Positions 41,077 through 58,082 of a stretch of 64,000 bases of DNA are shown one piece after another; the stretch's first letter is position 1; every line of letters starts with the position of its first letter. The position numbers and the translations under genes are program-made. The notes beneath the pieces were generated by a model. It made no database searches, was not told the DNA's origin, and was given only the letters and a program-made list of their open reading frames with translations. This stretch comes from Chlorokybus atmophyticus (lineage: Eukaryota; Plantae; Mesostigma and Chlorokybus algae), in the NCBI GenBank assembly GCA_009103225.1, contig RHPI01001965.1:449114-513113 (forward strand), in the 5' to 3' direction.

Positions 41077-43655
41077 ATGTGGGCGGCGGCGGCGGCGGCA
41101 GCGGCGCGCGCGCGGGTAAGGGCCTTGGCGAAGGGTGCTGTGTGTGGTCGGGTGGTGCCTAGACGGCATTGGGCTGTCTCAAGCTCACAGCCAGCAACAA
41201 GGTCATCACCGACACCGCCACCGCCTATCCTGCCGCACAGCAAGCCCGCCTTTGGGGTAGGCGCATGCTAGTTCACGCCTTCCATATTGGGGTGCATGCC
41301 TTGACCTTCTGTCTGCGAATCAACAACTGTTGCCATTGCTGTCCTGAGAGCTGCCTCAAAAACTAGTGCTTGCTCTGGTCCAGTGACAAGTCTGTCGTTG
41401 CAATGTTGAGACTGTTTGCTCATAGTCAATAGTCAATCGCTGAGGTTTGGAATAAGCTGATACGTGTGAGTGCGTGTGCAGCGTCTTGAGGCAGCGGGTG
41501 CGTTGGCTGTCTTGCTATCCGTTGCGTATGCTGCCACTCCCGGGACTAAGACGCACAGGTCAGTCTTTGCAATGCATTGCTTGCAGGTCTGTGTTTCTAC
41601 TTTGTCCATGTAATTGTAGTGTCTACTTCATGCTTTGTACTTTTGATCTTGCTTTCCAAGTGTAGACCAAGTGTGCATGGACTTGCTTTGTATCAATTTG
41701 ATTTAGTTGGCTATTGCTTTTTGTGATCAACCAGGTCGTTCATTTGGGTTGTGCGTGATGGTAGTCATTACTTTGTTCTGTACTCGTTGGTTACTTCTGT
41801 GCTCACTCACTTTGCCCTTACCAACTTCATCATCCATACTGCGTCGCCGCAGTGTTGTGTCGTTCTTCCTCTCGGACGCGCTGACCCCTCTCTTCCGTCT
41901 TCTTGACCCTGAGACCGCCCACAACGCGGCCATCTGGCTGGCCGGACGCCGCCTGACGCCCCGCGAGCACCGACCTGACCCGCCCTCCCTGACCACGCGC
42001 GTGTGGGGAAGGGAGTTCAGCAACCCCATCGGCCTGGCCGCGGGCTTCGACAAGGTTAGAGCACTTCGGTTACGTGCATGTTAGCATGCACGTGCGTGTG
42101 TGCGTGTGCTTGTCGGCGTGGGCGTGGGAACCACGGTGTGCGTGTGCACACATGCGGATGTACATACACGTGTGCGGGTGTGCCCGCACCTGTGCGTGCG
42201 CGTGCATGTGTGTATGCATGCATCGCGTGTGCCCTGCTGAAGTGAATGTACTATGCAGAGTGCTGAGGCAATTGACGGCTTGCTGGGGGCCGGCTTTGGG
42301 TTCGTTGAGATCGGGTCCGTGACCCCGCAGCCGCAGCCCGGCAACCCCAAGCCCCGCGTTTTCCGCATACCCGATGAGCGGTACGCCAACATTCCAACAT
42401 GACCAACTTTGACTGCAAGTTTGTTATTGCTATGTGCCACACAATACAACATTCACCTCTTTGTGCAGGGCCGTGATCAATCGCTATGGGTTCAACAGCG
42501 ATGGGGTCGACACGGTAGCGAACAGGTTGCAGCAGTACAGAGGCAATGCGGTTGTCAAAAATAAGCCGACAATAGGCTTGCTCGGTGTTAACCTAGGCAA
42601 GAACAAGGCCACGGAGGATGCCGCGGCCGACTATGAACTGGGCGTGATGGCGCTTAGCAGGTTTGCGGACTACCTGGTGAGGACTGGTGCGTGTGAGTGT
42701 GCGCGTGCACGTGCGCATGTGATGGTGTGGGTGTGGGTGCACGTATGCGTGTGCTTGTGGGTGTATGAACTTACCTTGTGATGCCCATACTCAACGTGTA
42801 TTTAGTGGTTGTGCACTCTTTGTGCAGGTTGTGAATGTGTCGAGCCCGAACACTCCTGGTTTGAGGGCGCTGCAGGGAAGAGAGCAGCTGGAAAGCCTTG
42901 TTGAGCGAGTCAAGGTGAGAGTTTATCGGGATGGTGGGCAATGAGCGCGGGTGTGATATATGTGTGTTTTGTTGTTGTGTAGATTGCACGCGATGCCGCC
43001 TGTAAAGGCCAGCAAAAGCCGCCTTTGCTGGTGAAGATTGCACCCGACCTCACGCACGAGGACCTGCGCGACGTGGTGGCTGTAGCTTTGAGCCAAGGCA
43101 TTGATGGCTTGGTAAGGAGGACCAATATGCAATTCAAGCCTCATGTGCTGCACCATTGCATGATATGTGGAGAACATGTGCATGTGGTTGATGTTATGTG
43201 CGTCTGTGTGCGTGCGCGCACAGATTGTATCCAACACGACCATCGCACGGCCTAGTGAAATCCAGAAACACGCGCACGGCAATGAAGTGGGTGGGTTGAG
43301 CGGCACGCCGCTGCTCCAGCCCTCCACAGACGTGTTGAAAGAAGTGTACAGCTTGTCCAACGTGAGTGGCATTGTCCAACGTGAGTGGCATCAACATTGC
43401 TATGAATTCATATTTACACACATTGACACCTCTGCGCAGGGCAAGATTCCTCTCATTGGCTGCGGCGGCGTGTCCACCGGCCGCGACGCGTACGCGAAGA
43501 TCCGCGCGGGAGCCTCCCTCGTCCAGCTGTACACAGCCCTCGCGTACGAGGGGCTCGGCCTCGTCCCGCGCATCAAGCGCGAGCTAGCTGAGTGCCTTGC
43601 CGCTGACGGGTACGACAGCGTCGCGGAAGCTGTGGGAGCCGACTGCAGAAGGTGA
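41077..43655 (+). CDS. PYRD: Dihydroorotate dehydrogenase (quinone), class 2, mitochondrial; multi-exon
   Basis: Transit-peptide-like first exon; [81 protein letters not shown]. Confidence 0.96.
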
Positions 43656-44087
43656 TGTTGAAGTTGAAGTTGAGGTGGATGTTGATTTGATATTCACTTG
43701 GTTGTAGCTGTTGGCCCTTGTTCAAAATGCAAAGGGAGTCATGTATGCTGGCGAGAGGTGTATCGAGTGACAAAGTGCACTACTATGTTTTGTTCCTTGA
43801 TCACTCCCTCACACGCGCACTCAAATACACTGTGCGCGCGTGTGTGCACACGCAGATTACAAATTGACTGCATGCGCACACACACGCACGCATGCACAGC
43901 TAGTGTACATCTCAAAAATGGATTATATATGATGCATCTTATATCTTATGCATTGCACCCCAAGCTCTGCTGCCAACAGCAACCACAGCTGCACATACAT
44001 ATCAATCACAACTTCACCTAGTATACAACATCCAAAAAGCATATATAGAGTGGCGGCTGTGCCGCGCTTTGCTCTACTGGGCTTGTT

Positions 44088-47000
44088 TTACTTCCTCGAG
44101 TCGGGCATGGCAAACTTCATGGCAAAGCGCGTGTTGGCGTTGGCCTTGATGAATGTCTCGAGGTACTCCAGCGTCACGTTCGTGGACTTGCCGTCCGGGT
44201 AGTCCATCTTGATCACCTCTCCTCCAGCCTAAGCATGCAAAACGATAAGGTAACTGTTATCATCATATAGTACTAGTTGGAGGTGTGCGTTCGTGTGTGT
44301 GCGTACTTTTCTTGTTCACATGATCAATTATTACCAAAACAGCACGGCACCTTCTTGAGGAAGATTGAGGGGATCGTCTTGAACTCAAAAGGAGCGGCGG
44401 GCTTTGAGTTCGTGGTGATGTCCATCTGTGCCACCGTCACCGAGGGGATAGCCTGCGGATGACAACACCGCCAAAGCATGTCAGGTGTGTAGCACACTCG
44501 CTTCAGGAATCTCGGGCACAATGTTGCATAAATACAAGTCACGAGTGTTTAACCACACAATGTTGCACGCCGCTGTTACCTGATAGCGCTTGCCGAGCTC
44601 GGCGTACTTGGGCTCGAGTTGGTTGCAGTACTTGCACCAGGGAGCGTAGAATTTGATGATTACGTCCTTAGTCTGTCTCGAACAAGTGAGTTGATGAGTG
44701 AATGATTGCTCAGTGGCAATGATGCACATGCACCAACATGTGCACGCACGCAATCACAAAGTCACACACACATGCGCCAGCAAGCACGCACGCACGCGCA
44801 TGTGCGCGGGCAAACATGCAAGCACACGTGCACACGCAGAGACGCACGTGCACGCCCACACACACAGGTGGGAGAGACTCAGAGACCACACTCACGTCGT
44901 CGTTCATGATTTCGTCCCAATTGGCCGGCGTGCGGTTGCCCACGGGCATCACGTCCAAGCGCTGCTTCGGGATGCGGCCCGCCACGTACAGCGCGCCCCT
45001 GATCTTGGCGGCGAGCTCCGGCGTTGTGGACCCTGCATGACAGCAGTTGTTGTTATTGATCTGTTGTCACAACGGATGCTTGACCTACTGAAAGGGAGAG
45101 TGTTTCGTGCCTGGTGCCATGCGCCACGTCCAGTTGCCTTTGCTCTTGCCAGGCACATTCATCCTTCCAGACTCGTCCAAACCAAGGTAGTCCTGTTGTT
45201 GAAACAATCTATTAGTTCATAGGTCATTTAGTAAAACACAACGATGCTTGCTCAATTGATCAATCTGTGTATAAGATAATTGCGATGATCACTCAAGCAA
45301 GCAATCAATCTGTCCTTCATCAGTCAATCATGCGTATCAAAAAGAACGCGCACGCGCACGCGCACATGCTGGAGCAATTCCTGTGCTCGAGTGTGTCCAC
45401 CCACCTGCATGGCGACGACGCACACATTTCCAACGCTCGCGAACCCCTGCCTCACGAGGTCCCACGCGACGTCCTCTCCGTCGTTCTTTCCGATATACAT
45501 CTGCGCGAACCTCTGCTCGTCCTTGGAGGCGGACTGCCACCAGCCGACGGTCGTGTTGTTGTCGTGCGTGCCGGGGTACACGAAGCAGTTGTTGTAGTGG
45601 TTGTGGGGGAGGTGGACGTTGTTGCCGTCGCCGCCGAAAGCGAACTGGAGGACGGCCATGCCGGGAGCGCCGACGCCCTCGCGCAAGGATACCACGTCCG
45701 TCGTGATCACCTACATGACAATGTGTCGGCAACTCAACCTAATCCAACATATTATTATATGCCAACATCATTACCCCAATATGACCCTACATATCCTTTA
45801 TGACCCGATGTAACGAAATAAGTGATGTTGTCACTTACCCCCAAGTCCTCAGCTATGATGGGCACGCGCTTGCCCAATGCTTTGCGGCACGCGTCGAAGA
45901 GCGCCGGCCCAGGACCCTGTGTTGGTTGTGTTGGTTAGTTGGGTTTGAATGTTGTTGCATGCAGTGTTGTTGAGTTGAGTGTGTGTGCAAGGAGTTTTCT
46001 TGCTTGCTTACCTTAAGCCACTCGCCGGACTTGGCGCTCGCGGCGCCTGCGGGGATGGCGTAGTAGCCCGCAAAGGCGCGGAAGTGGTCGATGCGGCAAA
46101 TGTCGGTCAACTGTACATGTGGCATTGTCACAATGGTTGGTAAAATAAACTGTGATGAAAGGTGTGCTGGATCACACACATACACACAAGAACAAACACG
46201 AGAACAAACACATGTGCCAGGGTGTATTCGCACACGTGTGCGCGTGTGTAGACATGCACGCAGAGGTACACAGATACACACGTGTGCGCACAAGCGCGCA
46301 GACACACACAGACACCCGCCCGCCCGCCCGCCCGCCCGCACACACACGCATGCACACAGCTGACTTGCCTGGAAGTTGCGTTCCATGCGCTCGATCCACC
46401 ACTTGTAGCCATCTTTGGCGTGTTGCGCCCAGTTGTACAGCGGGCTTCCCCACAGCTGCCCGTCATCACTGCCAACACGCGCACAAGTCGGTCAACCACC
46501 ACGCGGCACGCACAACATGAGCCCCAATTCCCACACTGTGAGCACCTAAAAGCGTCCGGGGGCACGCCACTGACTTGCGTGGGGCGCTTGGTGACGGGAT
46601 CCACCATGAACATGGAGGGAGAGACCCAGACTGAAGTGCTGTGTCCCGCCACATAAATTGGCTGGAAAGAAAGGAACCAGTTGCAAATCTCTCATTCCTT
46701 CACTCTTTCACTGCCTCAATGAAGGGAGCACACACACACACACACACACGCGCACACTCATGTGCACACGTGCACGCACACGCAGGTAGACAGTTGCACG
46801 CACGGACACGCACACACGCACACACGCCGGCTCACATGTCCGCACACGCACGACAACGAACAAGGAGAGTGCACACGCGCACGCACACGCACACGCGCAT
46901 GTATACCCCCGCACAAGCCCCCCNNNNNNNNNNTCTCACCATATCCCCAATGATCTGTATCCCCCTCGCATTCGCCTTCTTCCTCAGCGCCTGCCACTGC

Positions 47001-48869
47001 CTCTCAAAGAGAAACTGCACCGCCATGACATCCTCCACCTCGTTCTTCCACTTCTCCCCAAACTCCCTCAGCGCCCTCTCGTCCCTGTCCCTGTACTCCT
47101 CGGGCCACTCCCAGAAGTTGACTCCGCCGTGAACCTCGTCCAGGACTCTGAACAACGCGGCGTTCTGAAGCCAGGGAGTCTGGGCGCGGTACTCGAGGAA
47201 CTCCTGGAGCAGCTCGGTGGAACAGGCGGAGGAGAAGGCGAGGCCGGAGAGGAGGCGGCGGGCGGCTTTCTTCAGGAGCGGGTCCTTGAAGGCGAAGTAC
47301 TGTGGGGGGGAGAGGGAGAGATAGAGTTAGTAGCAGGAGGGCAGGGGGAGGGGAGGGGAGGGGAGGGGAGGGGCGTGTTGGAGGGAGTGAGGGACAGGGA
47401 GGACTTGTGGGGCATCGGTGCATGCACGGGCGCGCGGGCAACTGTGTGTGCGTGTATATGCGCGCGCCTGTGCGGGCATATGTGTGTCTGCGTGCGTGCG
47501 TGCGTGCATACACATGCTTGTCGAGCGTCTAAGGGTGCACGCGTTTGCACGCACCAATGCATGCATGTATCCCCACACCCATGCACCTCCCACCCACACA
47601 CGCATGCACACATCCACACAAAACTACCACATCTCCCCCCCCTCCCCCTCACCTTCTTCCAATCCCCTCCAAAATCCTCTCCTGCCCCCGTCCCCTCCCC
47701 TTCCTCCAGAAGTCCCAGTCTCCTCAGCTCCCCCAAGTCAATCATCCACGGGCTCCCGCTGAACGCCTCGCTGCTGCTGTACGGACTCCCGTCCGCGTCG
47801 GGCGGGACCAGCGGGAGGACCTGCCAGACGGACAGACCGGAGTCCGCCAACCAGTCGATGAAGGAGTGAGCTGCGGGGCCGAGGGTTCCCAGGGATTCGG
47901 GGCCGGGGAGACAGGTGGGGTGGAGGAGGACGCCTGGGTGGGGGGGAGTATGTTTGGGTTTTGGGGGGTACATGGACACATGTATGGTGGGTTGGGTGTG
48001 GACTTGTGTGTGTTGCGAGTTAGGAGTGGGGTGATGCGTGTGTGGGTGTGGGTGTTGAGGAAGGCGGAGTGTGTGAGTTGTGCAACACGGAAGGCTTGCG
48101 TGGGCTCTTTGGCCTGTCCATGTCGTGTCATGCGTAGAAGGGGATCAGAGTGTTCGTGTGTCTGTACGAGCGTTATGACTCGCTACGTGTGTACCTCCGC
48201 GGCGGGGCTGTGCGGACGCGTCGCGCGTAAAGGTGCCGGGGTAGGGCAGGGACTCGACCGAGTCGCCAAAGGGATATGGGTGGTCGGGATCCTGCGTTGA
48301 TAGCCAACATTCACCACGCACAACAACAAAATGTTGTTAAGACTATAATGTTCCACTCGGTGTTGTGCCCTGTCTCTGTTTCACACCGGAGTGCACACAT
48401 GCTTTCAACCATTCGACCCGCCTATTGTCTTGCGATGCATGCTTTGTGACCAGGAATCAGCCACACTAGAGCAAATACTACTACTTGACTACCAACTAAC
48501 GACTACTTGACTTCACACACACTGGTAAAAGCAAAGCCACATGACAGAATCATGTGTACCTGTTGTGTCGACTGACTACCAGCATGCATTCACACTCACT
48601 TGTTCGCCAGGCTTGAGGGTGGCGGTGACAGTGATGACGTTAGCCTGACGCCGCAAGGGGGTGGCGTTGGCGGCCAGGGGAGCGCCTCGGAGGTCGCCGG
48701 AGAGGCCGCTAGCACGGGCGGCGGTAGCAGCGACAGCGGCTGCCCTGTGGCAGCTGCTGCGGTTGAGGACATGTCTGCTGGCGGAGGTGGCTATTGCTAC
48801 ATGCGACGGCGGCAGCACCGTCGTTGCCGCCATCGCCGCCATGGCCGCGACTACCGCTATGGCGGCCAA
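44088..48869 (-). CDS. DPE1: Plastid 4-alpha-glucanotransferase (D-enzyme, GH77) with a fused C-terminal thioredoxin/PDI-like domain
   Basis: Transit peptide; RRGGVLLHPT, WQVLPL, RIDHFRAF, IAEDLG, GTHDN, GNWTWR; the reading frame continues through a GC-AG intron into ...NWDEIMNDD|TKDVIIKFYAPWCKYC..., stop at 44088. Confidence 0.9.
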
Positions 48870-49715
48870 GGGGTTTTACGCTCGCGCCCCTTTGGCTGCC
48901 AAGGACGACGACAACAGCACAAAGCCCCTCGCCTCCACCAGCGTAGCCCTCAACAAAGACGCCAACAACCTGCTTCACGTGGTGCCCGGCAATCCGCAGG
49001 ACCTGTATTCCTTCTTTGCCGTCTTGATCGGCCTAAAACATAATACCAGCCCTACCCAGGTGACCGAATAATGGCGGTCTTTTTGTCTGGATGGAGACGT
49101 CGCTATCGGTCAGTCGCGAAGGCGAAAGGCGACGTCTTCTCCTAGATCGTGATATCTTGATCAGCCGGATATCTCAATCTATTTCAAGTGATATCGAACT
49201 ATCACGTGACTTTCCTCACGCCCCTGCTGTGTCGGACAGAAATAAGCGGCGCGCGCCCAAGAATCCTGCGACGGACGCCGCCGCCACCATCAACAACAAC
49301 GGCGACGACGACGACGACGACGACGACGTCAATGATTACAACGAAGGCAATCTTAACAACGTCGACGACGGCAAAGACACGACGGCAACCTTGACGTTGG
49401 AGGCGACGTGGCCTGGGTGCTGGAGCGTGTGTGCGCATCAGTCCAGCAGGAGGGCTCTAACCCTGTGCAGTGTGTTGGTGTGAAAGACGCGATACACAGA
49501 GTCAAGCAAACAGATGCACGCAGAAGTGTTGTCTGGATCACTGCATTAATGGGCATACGTCTGGCCTGAACAACCCTAACTCTTGGACCTTAGCTGACCT
49601 TGCCGACAAGATTAAATCAGATGAGTTGCAGCAGTAGTGGATGTAAGAGGCATAGGTTGAGTACTATCCTGTTAGTATCCAACAAGTAGGTTATGTTGTT
49701 ACCATCGCCGATGTC

Positions 49716-55700: not shown

Positions 55701-56127
55701 ATGTTAGTAACAGCAGCGGCAATGCCGGGCTGGCGGATGCGTATGCGGCGGGTACTTTCAGACCCGCGCCCACGTGTAAGCTGCGATGAAAGCGTGCGTG
55801 CGTGTGTGCGTATGCATATGGGCGGGTGCATGTGTATGCGCGCGTGTGTATGTGTCATACTATACCAACATGCCAACTGATACACGTCTCGTCCCCTCCC
55901 TCTCTCCAGCCCCTGCGTTGCGCGCCTCCTCCGTGATGCTCCAAGCCCGCGCGATCCAGCACCGCCTAGCGGTCCTGGGTCTCGGACGCGCCCCGCTGCC
56001 GCGCGACAAGCACTCCTTCGCCGCGTTCCCGGACGGGATCGGAGGGGGAGGGGGAGGGGGAGCAGGGAATAAGAGATTGGCGGGGGCGCACGTGTTTGAG
56101 ACGCTGGAGTCACAGGTGAGACGAAAA

Positions 56128-56208
<81 letters not shown>

Positions 56209-57273
56209 NNNNNNNNNNNNNNNNNNNNNNNNNNNNNNNNNNNNNNNNNNNNNNNNNNNNNNNNNNNNNNNNNNNNNNNNNNNNNNNNNNNNNNNNNNNN
56301 NNNNNNNNNNNNNNNNNNNNNNNNNNNNNNNNNNNNNNNNNNNNNNNNNNNNNNNNNNNNNNNNNNNNNNNNNNNNNNNNNNNNNNNNNNNNNNNNNNNN
56401 NNNNNNNNNNNNNNNNNNNNNNNNNNNNNNNNNNNNNNNNNNNNNNNNNNNNNNNNNNNNNNNNNNNNNNNNNNNNNNNNNNNNNNNNNNNNNNNNNNNN
56501 NNNNNNNNNNNNNNNNNNNNNNNNNNNNNNNNNNNNNNNNNNNNNNNNNNNNNNNNNNNNNNNNNNNNNNNNNNNNNNNNNNNNNNNNNNNNNNNNNNNN
56601 NNNNNNNNNNNNNNNNNNNNNNNNNNNNNNNNNNNNNNNNNNNNNNNNNNNNNNNNNNNNNNNNNNNNNNNNNNNNNNNNNNNNNNNNNNNNNNNNNNNN
56701 NNNNNNNNNNNNNNNNNNNNNNNNNNNNNNNNNNNNNNNNNNNNNNNNNNNNNNNNNNNNNNNNNNNNNNNNNNNNNNNNNNNNNNNNNNNNNNNNNNNN
56801 NNNNNNNNNNNNNNNNNNNNNNNNNNNNNNNNNNNNNNNNNNNNNNNNNNNNNNNNNNNNNNNNNNNNNNNNNNNNNNNNNNNNNNNNNNNNNNNNNNNN
56901 NNNNNNNNNNNNNNNNNNNNNNNNNNNNNNNNNNNNNNNNNNNNNNNNNNNNNNNNNNNNNNNNNNNNNNNNNNNNNNNNNNNNNNNNNNACCCCCCACC
57001 CACCCACACAAGCACACACCACACTCTCTCTCACCCCCCCTCCTTCTCTCTCAGCAGCATCAGTTGGCTGAGCAAGCCCGTCTCCGCGCCCTCAGCAAGG
57101 CCGTCTCCTCGATCCTTGACAGCAACGGGGGCGTGATCGGAGTCGGCGCGCTGTCGTCGTCCTCCTCCCTCGCGGCGCTGCCTCACCAGCAGGGGCAGGG
57201 GCAGGGGCAGGGTGGAAGGGGGTCCTTGAGAGGGGGGGCGCTGAGGCCGTACAAGTCGTCGCAGCGGCTCTGA
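49716..57273 (+). CDS. Large multi-exon coiled-coil protein with a TSNAXIP1/CLHC1-like N-terminal domain (probably cilia-associated); spans an assembly gap
   Basis: KPEFLTRLETFVGREL...RLSVFSEAFSYLINSFVTYQPLLQEIKSAYD followed by long coiled-coil and low-complexity exons; exon structure only partly resolved. Confidence 0.65.
56209..56990. other. Assembly gap (N run)
   Basis: 782 N; a further 10-N gap at 46924-46933. Confidence 0.99.
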
Positions 57274-58082
57274 GGGGAAAGGAGGAGATGTGCAGGAGAC
57301 ATACAGACACTCGGGCGCCGCACGCGCGTGAGGAGAGACTCTCCGAGAGAGTGATGAGGGGCGTGATGGCGATGACTGAGCCTTTGACAACACGACGCGT
57401 TGTCTGAGCTGAGGTAAGCGAATGACGACGTTTCTTGAGGAGTGTTTGCTTTGATTGTTGTTGCTTCAATGCTATTGTTTTGGTAGAGCTTCAGTCCACC
57501 GACGATTGGCATGGAAGGCGTAACAACACTGCCGTGGACGGCGTATTGCTATTTGACTGACTTTGGATCGCTCTACCAGATTAAGCTGCCCAGGTAACCT
57601 ACCGCACGTGTCGGCATGCATAACACGCTTCATTTGTTGTATCCACCTGCCTAGAAAGTTGTCCTTGTGTGCAGCACAGCAAAGACTGCAAGCGTTGCCA
57701 ATGAGATCACAAGGACAGGCAGTGCTGACGGAAAGGCAGCAGTGAGGCGACTCAGACCACGGAGAACACTGGTAGATGCCCTTGAAGCGTTGCTACAACA
57801 TGATGGGGCTAGGTGCAGCGCAGTCACTGCAGGCATTGGTTTGAACGGAGCAACTGTTGTTGGGTTGGCAACGTGCCAGCCTAAGCATGTCATTTTGTGA
57901 GCACAAGCGCACTGTACAGTTGCACAAGGCGCAGAAGCAAATACACAGAAACAAGCTCTCCAGAAGGCAAGGCACCCCACAAACCAACATCCATAACTCT
58001 CAAAACCAACGTCCAAATATACAACTTTGCAACTTTGTGACAAGCGCTCACACGCACACATCAAGCGCGCCATCGTCAACTC

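Follow-up and report, generated by a model that had tools for sequence, protein, structure and literature searches.

We analysed a 64,000-nucleotide stretch of the genome of Chlorokybus atmophyticus, a streptophyte-type green alga (GenBank assembly GCA_009103225.1, contig RHPI01001965.1, positions 449,114 to 513,113 of the forward strand; hereafter the window, in whose own numbering all positions are given), and found on its minus strand a gene that joins a D-enzyme (DPE1) of the GH77 family to a thioredoxin-fold (Trx) domain of the type found in protein disulfide isomerases (PDIs), with the active-site motif WCKYC. This gene, DPE1-Trx, consists of 14 exons, and its coding sequence (48842..44088, from the ATG at 48842 to the TAA at 44090-44088) is open throughout its 2235 nt, specifying a product of 744 residues. 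An earlier note, made from the letters of this DNA alone, had proposed such a fusion, and it now agrees with our gene model, with the homology results for the two halves and with spliced transcripts from two studies. The support that the sequence gives to this architecture is far beyond chance, and we consider it very probable that the fusion protein exists. For the explanation as a whole, in which the fused Trx domain would additionally serve as an oxidoreductase tethered to starch metabolism, we estimate a probability of roughly 55%.

The joined DPE1-Trx message is expressed, as seen in contigs from two independent studies. We leveraged two public transcriptome runs from different studies, X1 (2013) and X2 (2021), whose contigs were mapped on positions 43500-49300 of the window. 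Sequence words sampled from positions 44000-49000 were present at fractions of 0.50 in X1 and 0.43 in X2, approximately what exons alone would be expected to give, and depth in the contig mapping was zero in intron-only bins, indicating that the contigs derive from spliced RNA and not from DNA. One contig of 2079 nt in X1 and one of 2566 nt in X2 match the locus with zero mismatches, the latter covering 43904..48989 from the 5' untranslated region to the 3' untranslated region with all 13 introns removed. The joints of 12 introns were listed directly, while that of the 13th (47299/47653) was taken from the adjoining coordinates of mapped contig records.

The joint on which the fusion depends is that between exons 10 and 11. 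Read on the minus strand, exon 10 ends in CCAG at 45111 and is followed by GCACGA, and exon 11 starts at 45032 after TGCAG, exactly as in the splice CCAG/GCACGA...TGCAG/GG that the earlier note had put forward. Both contigs drop exactly 78 nt between 45031 and 45110, with 4 letters ambiguous, such that five placements of the cut are possible, among which an AG acceptor is obtained only with GC...AG; both contigs also lack three introns downstream and nine upstream of this one. The 78-nt GC-AG splice of intron 10 is therefore genuine and present in transcripts from two studies. Joining the two exons yields GNWTWRMAPG followed by STTPELAAKIRGALYVAGR, and reading on through exons 12-14 meets no stop before the TAA, so that the stop-free passage into the Trx part that had been read from the letters holds in the spliced messages too, whereas retention of intron 10 would bring in an in-frame stop (TAG, 45087-45085).

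Eleven of the 13 introns are GT-AG and two are GC-AG, namely intron 6 (46368..46111) and intron 10 (45110..45033). The intron 6 joint (46110/46369) was likewise seen in the contigs, with plus-strand ends CT..GC, and the occurrence of a second GC-AG intron in the same gene indicates that this splice type is in use here. The two transcript-confirmed GC donors read GCAAGT (46111-46368) and GCACGA (45033-45110), and such donors may be fairly common in this genome. Codon bias is identical in the two halves of the gene, with a G+C fraction at third codon positions (GC3) of 0.84 in the GH77 half and in the Trx half alike, which indicates that the join is not recent foreign DNA.

The larger part of the product (residues 111-615) is predicted to be a complete 4-alpha-glucanotransferase of the DPE1 type. 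Pfam family PF02446 was recovered on exons 3, 4, 9 and 10, at profile positions 1-76, 88-200 and 330-460 of 465, and residues 111-615 of the spliced model align at 45% identity with a 508-residue bacterial MalQ (P0098), gaplessly over the exon 10/11 joint and as far as MalQ residue 506. This extent implies that the GH77 domain is complete, with exon 11 supplying its terminal helix, in accordance with the similarity in spacing to the C-terminal helix of bacterial amylomaltase that the earlier note had described. The catalytic Asp, Glu and Asp are in place in RIDHF (D407), AEDLG (E455) and THDN (D508), aligned with both MalQ and Arabidopsis DPE1, and their spacing (407/455/508) is the same as that of residues 373/420/473 in Arabidopsis DPE1 (PMC12892837). 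Exon 9 has its best solved relative in Arabidopsis DPE1 itself (PDB 5cpq, 4.5e-30).

As in land-plant DPE1 (Arabidopsis 5CPQ and potato 1X1N), the GH77 catalytic domain is preceded by a plastid-type N-terminal extension: the first 80 residues include 21 Ala, 15 Ser/Thr and 7 Arg with only 2 acidic residues, a composition that fits a chloroplast transit peptide, as DPE1 would have. The solved plant chains end about 51 residues past the exon 9 match, a length equal to exon 10 plus the last helix, leaving no room for a Trx domain. The algal protein, unlike plant DPE1, continues for about 129 further residues, which form the putative PDI-type domain.

These C-terminal residues (about 616-727) appear from homology to make up one Trx-fold domain of the PDI a' type. 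Exon 12 matches the Pfam thioredoxin family (PF00085) at 3.3e-9 and 37.1 bits, against a cut-off of 23.5, and among NCBIfam models it scores best with the PDI family (ER_PDI_fam TIGR01130, 1.6e-12, 47.7 bits, at a' position 363-393 of 476; pdi_dom TIGR01126, 5.6e-10), compared with 26 bits (6e-6) for the thioredoxin equivalog model and 21.2 bits for the APS reductase model. Among solved structures, the PDIA3 a' domain comes closest to exon 12, with about 75% identity in a stretch of 28 residues. Exon 13 matches PF00085 weakly (profile 50-79, E=0.026), and its cis-Pro loop T-I-P-S aligns with S-I-P-T of the thioredoxin TrxC, in which the IP(T/S) element is conserved. Alignments by tblastn with environmental Trx proteins run from residue 618 to residues 720-727, spanning the Trx fold in sequence; PDB searches with exon 11 alone and with exon 14 alone returned no match. 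The only two Cys of this half, C646 and C649, lie in the WCKYC motif (residues 645-649), where the dipeptide between them is KY and not GH.

Two more familiar identities were tried for this domain and rejected. The Trx domains of PDIA3/ERp57, PDIA1 (a') and TXNDC5/ERp46 are the best matches of exon 12, sharing the pattern KDV.I.FYAPWCxxC..LEPKY.ELG, and the Lys preceding FYAPWC is common to exon 12 and the TXNDC5 domains. Unlike classical PDIs of the endoplasmic reticulum (ER), however, the algal protein carries CKYC in place of CGHC, has a single Trx domain with no b/b' domains, begins with a transit-peptide-like and not a signal-peptide-like N-terminus, ends in PDSRK with no KDEL-type ER retention signal, and has the domain fused to a glucanotransferase that is probably plastidial. 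Plastid regulatory thioredoxins (f, m, x, y, z) are stand-alone proteins of about 12 kDa with a WCGPC active site; the CKYC motif, the fusion and the scores of 26 vs. 47.7 bits led us to reject this assignment as well.

The CKYC motif, though rare, also occurs elsewhere. When JGI metagenome contigs were scanned for YAPWCKYC, 25 loci were obtained, about half of which encode plant-type APS reductases (APRs), proteins of about 455 residues with PAPS_reduct and Thioredoxin domains, and the others PDI-like or other Trx-fold proteins; GH77 adjoined the motif at none of the 25. The description of the motif as atypical in the earlier note thus stands insofar as it is unusual, but has to be tempered given this recurrence. 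Environmental APRs bearing WCKYC have 452-459 residues (L003, L005, L012, L015, L018, L020 and L022-L024), and the motif of Arabidopsis APR is WCPFC. Plant-type APR, a plastid enzyme, likewise carries a Trx-fold domain at the C-terminal end of its chain, and the presence of CKYC in the built-in domain of its environmental forms indicates that the motif is compatible with a working enzyme-fused redox domain. The chemistry of APR consumes thiol electrons and its fused domain takes part in catalysis; GH77 transglycosylation, in contrast, has no redox step, and exon 12 is closer to the PDI family than to the APS reductase model by the scores given above.

The boundary between the two domains lies within exon 11 and not at an intron. 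The GH77 alignment ends in RLDV at residue 615, M616 follows (in-frame ATG, 44949-44947), and Trx-type alignments begin at residue 618, leaving no linker. With this boundary inside one exon and in one frame, a wrongly predicted intron between two neighbouring genes cannot account for the fusion, and that candidate was rejected, exon 11 holding both the last GH77 helix and the first Trx residues. The position of the boundary also argues against simple exon shuffling. Speculatively, M616 could be a relic of the start codon that a PDI-domain gene had before its capture. The earlier statement that the Trx part has no separate start needs amending in this one respect, as the domain border coincides with an in-frame ATG.

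Coordinates of the DPE1-Trx message, its exons and intron 10, in the numbering of the window
Feature	Position	Strand	Evidence
Mature mRNA extent	43904..48989	-	2566-nt contig of run X2: 147 nt 5' untranslated region + 2235 nt coding sequence + 184 nt 3' untranslated region
Exon 1, residues 1-81, start ATG 48842, rich in Ala/Ser/Thr/Arg	48600..48842	-	No Pfam match
Exon 2, residues 82-114, GH77 alignment begins at R111	48195..48291	-	Alignment and transcript joint
Exon 3, residues 114-207, GH77 N-terminal part (LLHPTCLPG...)	47653..47933	-	Pfam PF02446, 4e-17
Exon 4, residues 208-327, GH77	46940..47299	-	Pfam PF02446, 3.2e-23
Exon 5, residues 328-366, GH77	46546..46661	-	Gene model, transcript joint, MalQ alignment
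Exon 6, residues 366-399, GH77; followed by GC-AG intron 6	46369..46468	-	Gene model and transcript joint
Exon 7, residues 400-432, nucleophile motif CRIDHF (D407)	46012..46110	-	MalQ alignment
Exon 8, residues 433-458, acid/base motif IIAEDLG (E455)	45839..45916	-	MalQ alignment
Exon 9, residues 459-560, GTHDN (D508)	45405..45710	-	Pfam GH77, 2.7e-24; PDB 5cpq, 4.5e-30
Exon 10, residues 561-588, GH77 motif MNVPG...GNWTWR	45111..45192	-	Pfam GH77 to profile position 460/465
Intron 10, 78 nt, GC-AG, phase 1	45033..45110	-	Spliced out in X1 and X2 contigs
Exon 11 (junction exon), residues 588-633, last GH77 helix to about V615 (44950), M616, Trx start	44896..45032	-	MalQ and Trx alignments
Exon 12, residues 634-664, Trx active site WCKYC, Cys646 and Cys649 (CKYC codons 44636-44625)	44580..44672	-	Pfam Thioredoxin, NCBIfam
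Exon 13, residues 665-698, Trx strand 3 to strand 4, cis-Pro loop T-I-P-S (P692, 44371-44369)	44351..44452	-	Pfam and TrxC alignment
Exon 14, residues 699-744 and TAA, last Trx strand and helix (to about residue 727), 17-residue tail	44088..44228	-	tblastn alignments

Some further features of the locus and the window were noted. Most introns consist of imperfect (GTGTGCGTGC)n-like simple sequence rich in GT/GC (e.g., 44700-44890, 46180-46360, 46760-46920 and 47440-47640), to which short unrelated contigs of other transcripts stick in the contig mapping. A scaffold gap written as 10 Ns (46924-46933) lies in intron 4 just past the donor of exon 4, an exon that is itself intact and bridged by the transcript contigs. 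Downstream, a multi-exon gene resembling dihydroorotate dehydrogenase (41700-43803, plus strand) converges on DPE1-Trx, and only about 100 nt separate the end of its transcript contig in X2, at 43803, from that of the DPE1-Trx mRNA, at 43904. Within the 64-kb window no tRNA or Rfam family was found, and the composition profile contains an AT-rich island at 56001-58000, with a GC fraction of 0.35 vs. 0.55-0.60 on both sides.

Searches for relatives of the fusion relied on 45-residue junction queries instead of the spliced full-length protein, which makes their negatives weak. The junction exon (45 residues), searched with HMMER against 1.84 billion representative proteins, gave no relative and two spurious repeat proteins, a weak negative for so short a query; the lack of a self match among the representatives implies that the fusion is not itself a cluster representative. 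A word search with exon 11 (the scored part of a 106-residue stop-free stretch) against database proteins of about 58-185 residues found no match, and a scan of JGI metagenomes with exon 11 plus three intron-derived codons (48-residue minimum) gave 600 pattern matches, none of which was confirmed. An exon-profile search on a MalQ scaffold through a set of 5.8 billion proteins did not place DPE1-Trx among the best 120, which were bacterial MalQs; with a simulated score of 732.6 bits for the DPE1-Trx protein against a cut of 730 bits, this result is uninformative on its presence. Full-text literature search found no description of a protein combining GH77/DPE1 with Trx, nor one under Chlorokybus starch. 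The fusion is apparently unreported and known so far from a single organism.

These observations lead us to propose that one nuclear gene gives one mRNA and one 744-residue protein, in which a transit-like N-terminus, a complete DPE1-type GH77 domain and a linker-free Trx domain of the PDI a' type with CKYC and a cis-Pro loop follow one another, with both halves presumably active and located in the plastid. DPE1 would thereby tether a thiol-disulfide oxidoreductase to the starch or malto-oligosaccharide machinery, and the tethered domain may act on disulfides of a partner subunit or of redox-sensitive starch enzymes nearby, by oxidation, reduction or isomerisation. GH77 chemistry needs no thiol and has no redox step, and the Trx domain extends from the terminus of the final barrel helix, a position that (beta/alpha)8 folds generally have on the side remote from the active site; for these reasons action in trans, on other proteins or on the partner subunit, is the role that we favour, albeit tentatively and at slightly under even odds. 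A link of DPE1-Trx to redox state is suggested by the domain composition and is plausible. Redox modules fused to a partner are known in other plastid proteins, such as NTRC, in which NADPH-thioredoxin reductase and Trx are combined and which controls starch synthesis via AGPase, and GAPDH-B with its CP12-like tail, but these involve other folds and partners and neither contains GH77 or a PDI a'-type domain.

Second in likelihood is action in cis, in which the domain would make or break a disulfide inside the GH77 half, or in the partner chain of a DPE1 dimer, such that disproportionating activity follows the plastid redox state. A fusion with no linker favours a rigid arrangement within the molecule, and GAPDH-B, whose C-terminal extension makes that enzyme redox-regulated by itself, offers an analogy. 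Six Cys are present in the GH77 half; C404 precedes the nucleophile Asp407 by three residues, and C500 and C555 lie in barrel strands. We nevertheless consider such a switch rather unlikely, as a Trx domain attached behind the final barrel helix should sit well away from the catalytic face, Cys at or adjoining the positions of C500 and C555 also occur in bacterial MalQs that have no Trx domain, and CuCl2 oxidation did not change the DPE activity of land plants in vitro (PMC13681392). Several points weigh against our own account as well. Several of the Cys positions in the GH77 half are shared with bacterial MalQs, with no obvious regulatory pair among them, and the argument from attachment geometry is textbook reasoning. 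Exon 14 alone has no match to the hidden Markov models of Pfam or NCBIfam, and no orthologous fusion was found with the 45-residue junction queries, leaving the Trx half without support from conservation or selection. Short-read contigs, moreover, neither show transcript starts nor prove single molecules, and leave room for an extra internal transcription start at or near M616 and for a minor intron-10-retaining isoform stopping at the TAG.

This last property of the contigs bears on a reading with two products, in which the DPE1 message would stop at the TAG (45087-45085) with intron 10 retained, or end nearby, a Trx message would start in intron 10 or exon 11 and use the ATG at 44949, and the joined contigs would be assembly merges of overlapping transcripts. 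The position of that ATG exactly at the domain border speaks for it, but we regard it as very improbable: transcripts ending at the TAG near 45086, which the earlier note had set against its own proposal, were not encountered, the exon 10/11 joint being spliced in both runs with no intron-10-retaining contig reported; a DPE1 ending there would forgo the conserved terminal helix, which exon 11 encodes in the same frame as the Trx domain; and a stand-alone protein from M616 would lack a transit peptide. It is also conceivable that the fusion is neutral, a lineage-specific join in which DPE1 gained a PDI a' domain copy; this would be transcribed and translated without contributing anything, or would serve only as an appendage for folding or solubility. 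The failure of every search to find relatives of the junction, and an exon 14 with no profile match of its own, would accord with this, but the Trx diagnostics are intact (both Cys, the preceding Trp, the cis-Pro loop and an alignment over the full length of the fold) with no damage to the frame, the shared GC3 shows the join not to be recent debris, and the three extra introns are precisely spliced, making neutrality quite improbable in our view.

Some background to the proposal of a tethered oxidoreductase comes from the known partners of these enzymes. In apple, thioredoxin m4 binds DPE1, yet oxidation by CuCl2 left DPE activity unchanged in vitro (PMC13681392). DPE1 associates with PHO1 in a complex, and Trx regulation extends to GWD and BAM1 (PMC12892837), while PDIs have been cited in chloroplasts (PMC4030966). 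The redox control of starch metabolism that is known relies on free thioredoxins, whose targets include GWD, BAM1 and AGPase. A 2006 report by Lu and Christopher, found in the references of PMC4030966, is said in its title to have immunolocalised a PDI to Arabidopsis chloroplasts and to have associated it with starch biogenesis. A broader possibility, which we hold to be unlikely, is that PDI-type thiol-disulfide exchange belongs to starch turnover in early streptophytes, and that the fusion is a 'Rosetta stone' for a starch-localised switch on DPE1 or on GWD/BAM/PHO1/AGPase.

Together, these results make GH77 a further member of the small group of plastid enzymes that have a Trx module of their own (APR, NTRC). 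In land plants, DPE1 activity looks insensitive to redox state even though the enzyme binds a thioredoxin. A DPE1 with a built-in dithiol domain represents a natural test object, one that could tell if the malto-oligosaccharide step has recruited disulfide exchange and could give a function to the chloroplast PDI linked to starch in the 2006 title. If the fusion is neutral and limited to a single lineage, DPE1-Trx would be a curiosity; if the 'Rosetta stone' reading is true, it would offer a testable entry to the coupling of starch breakdown with the light/dark redox state.

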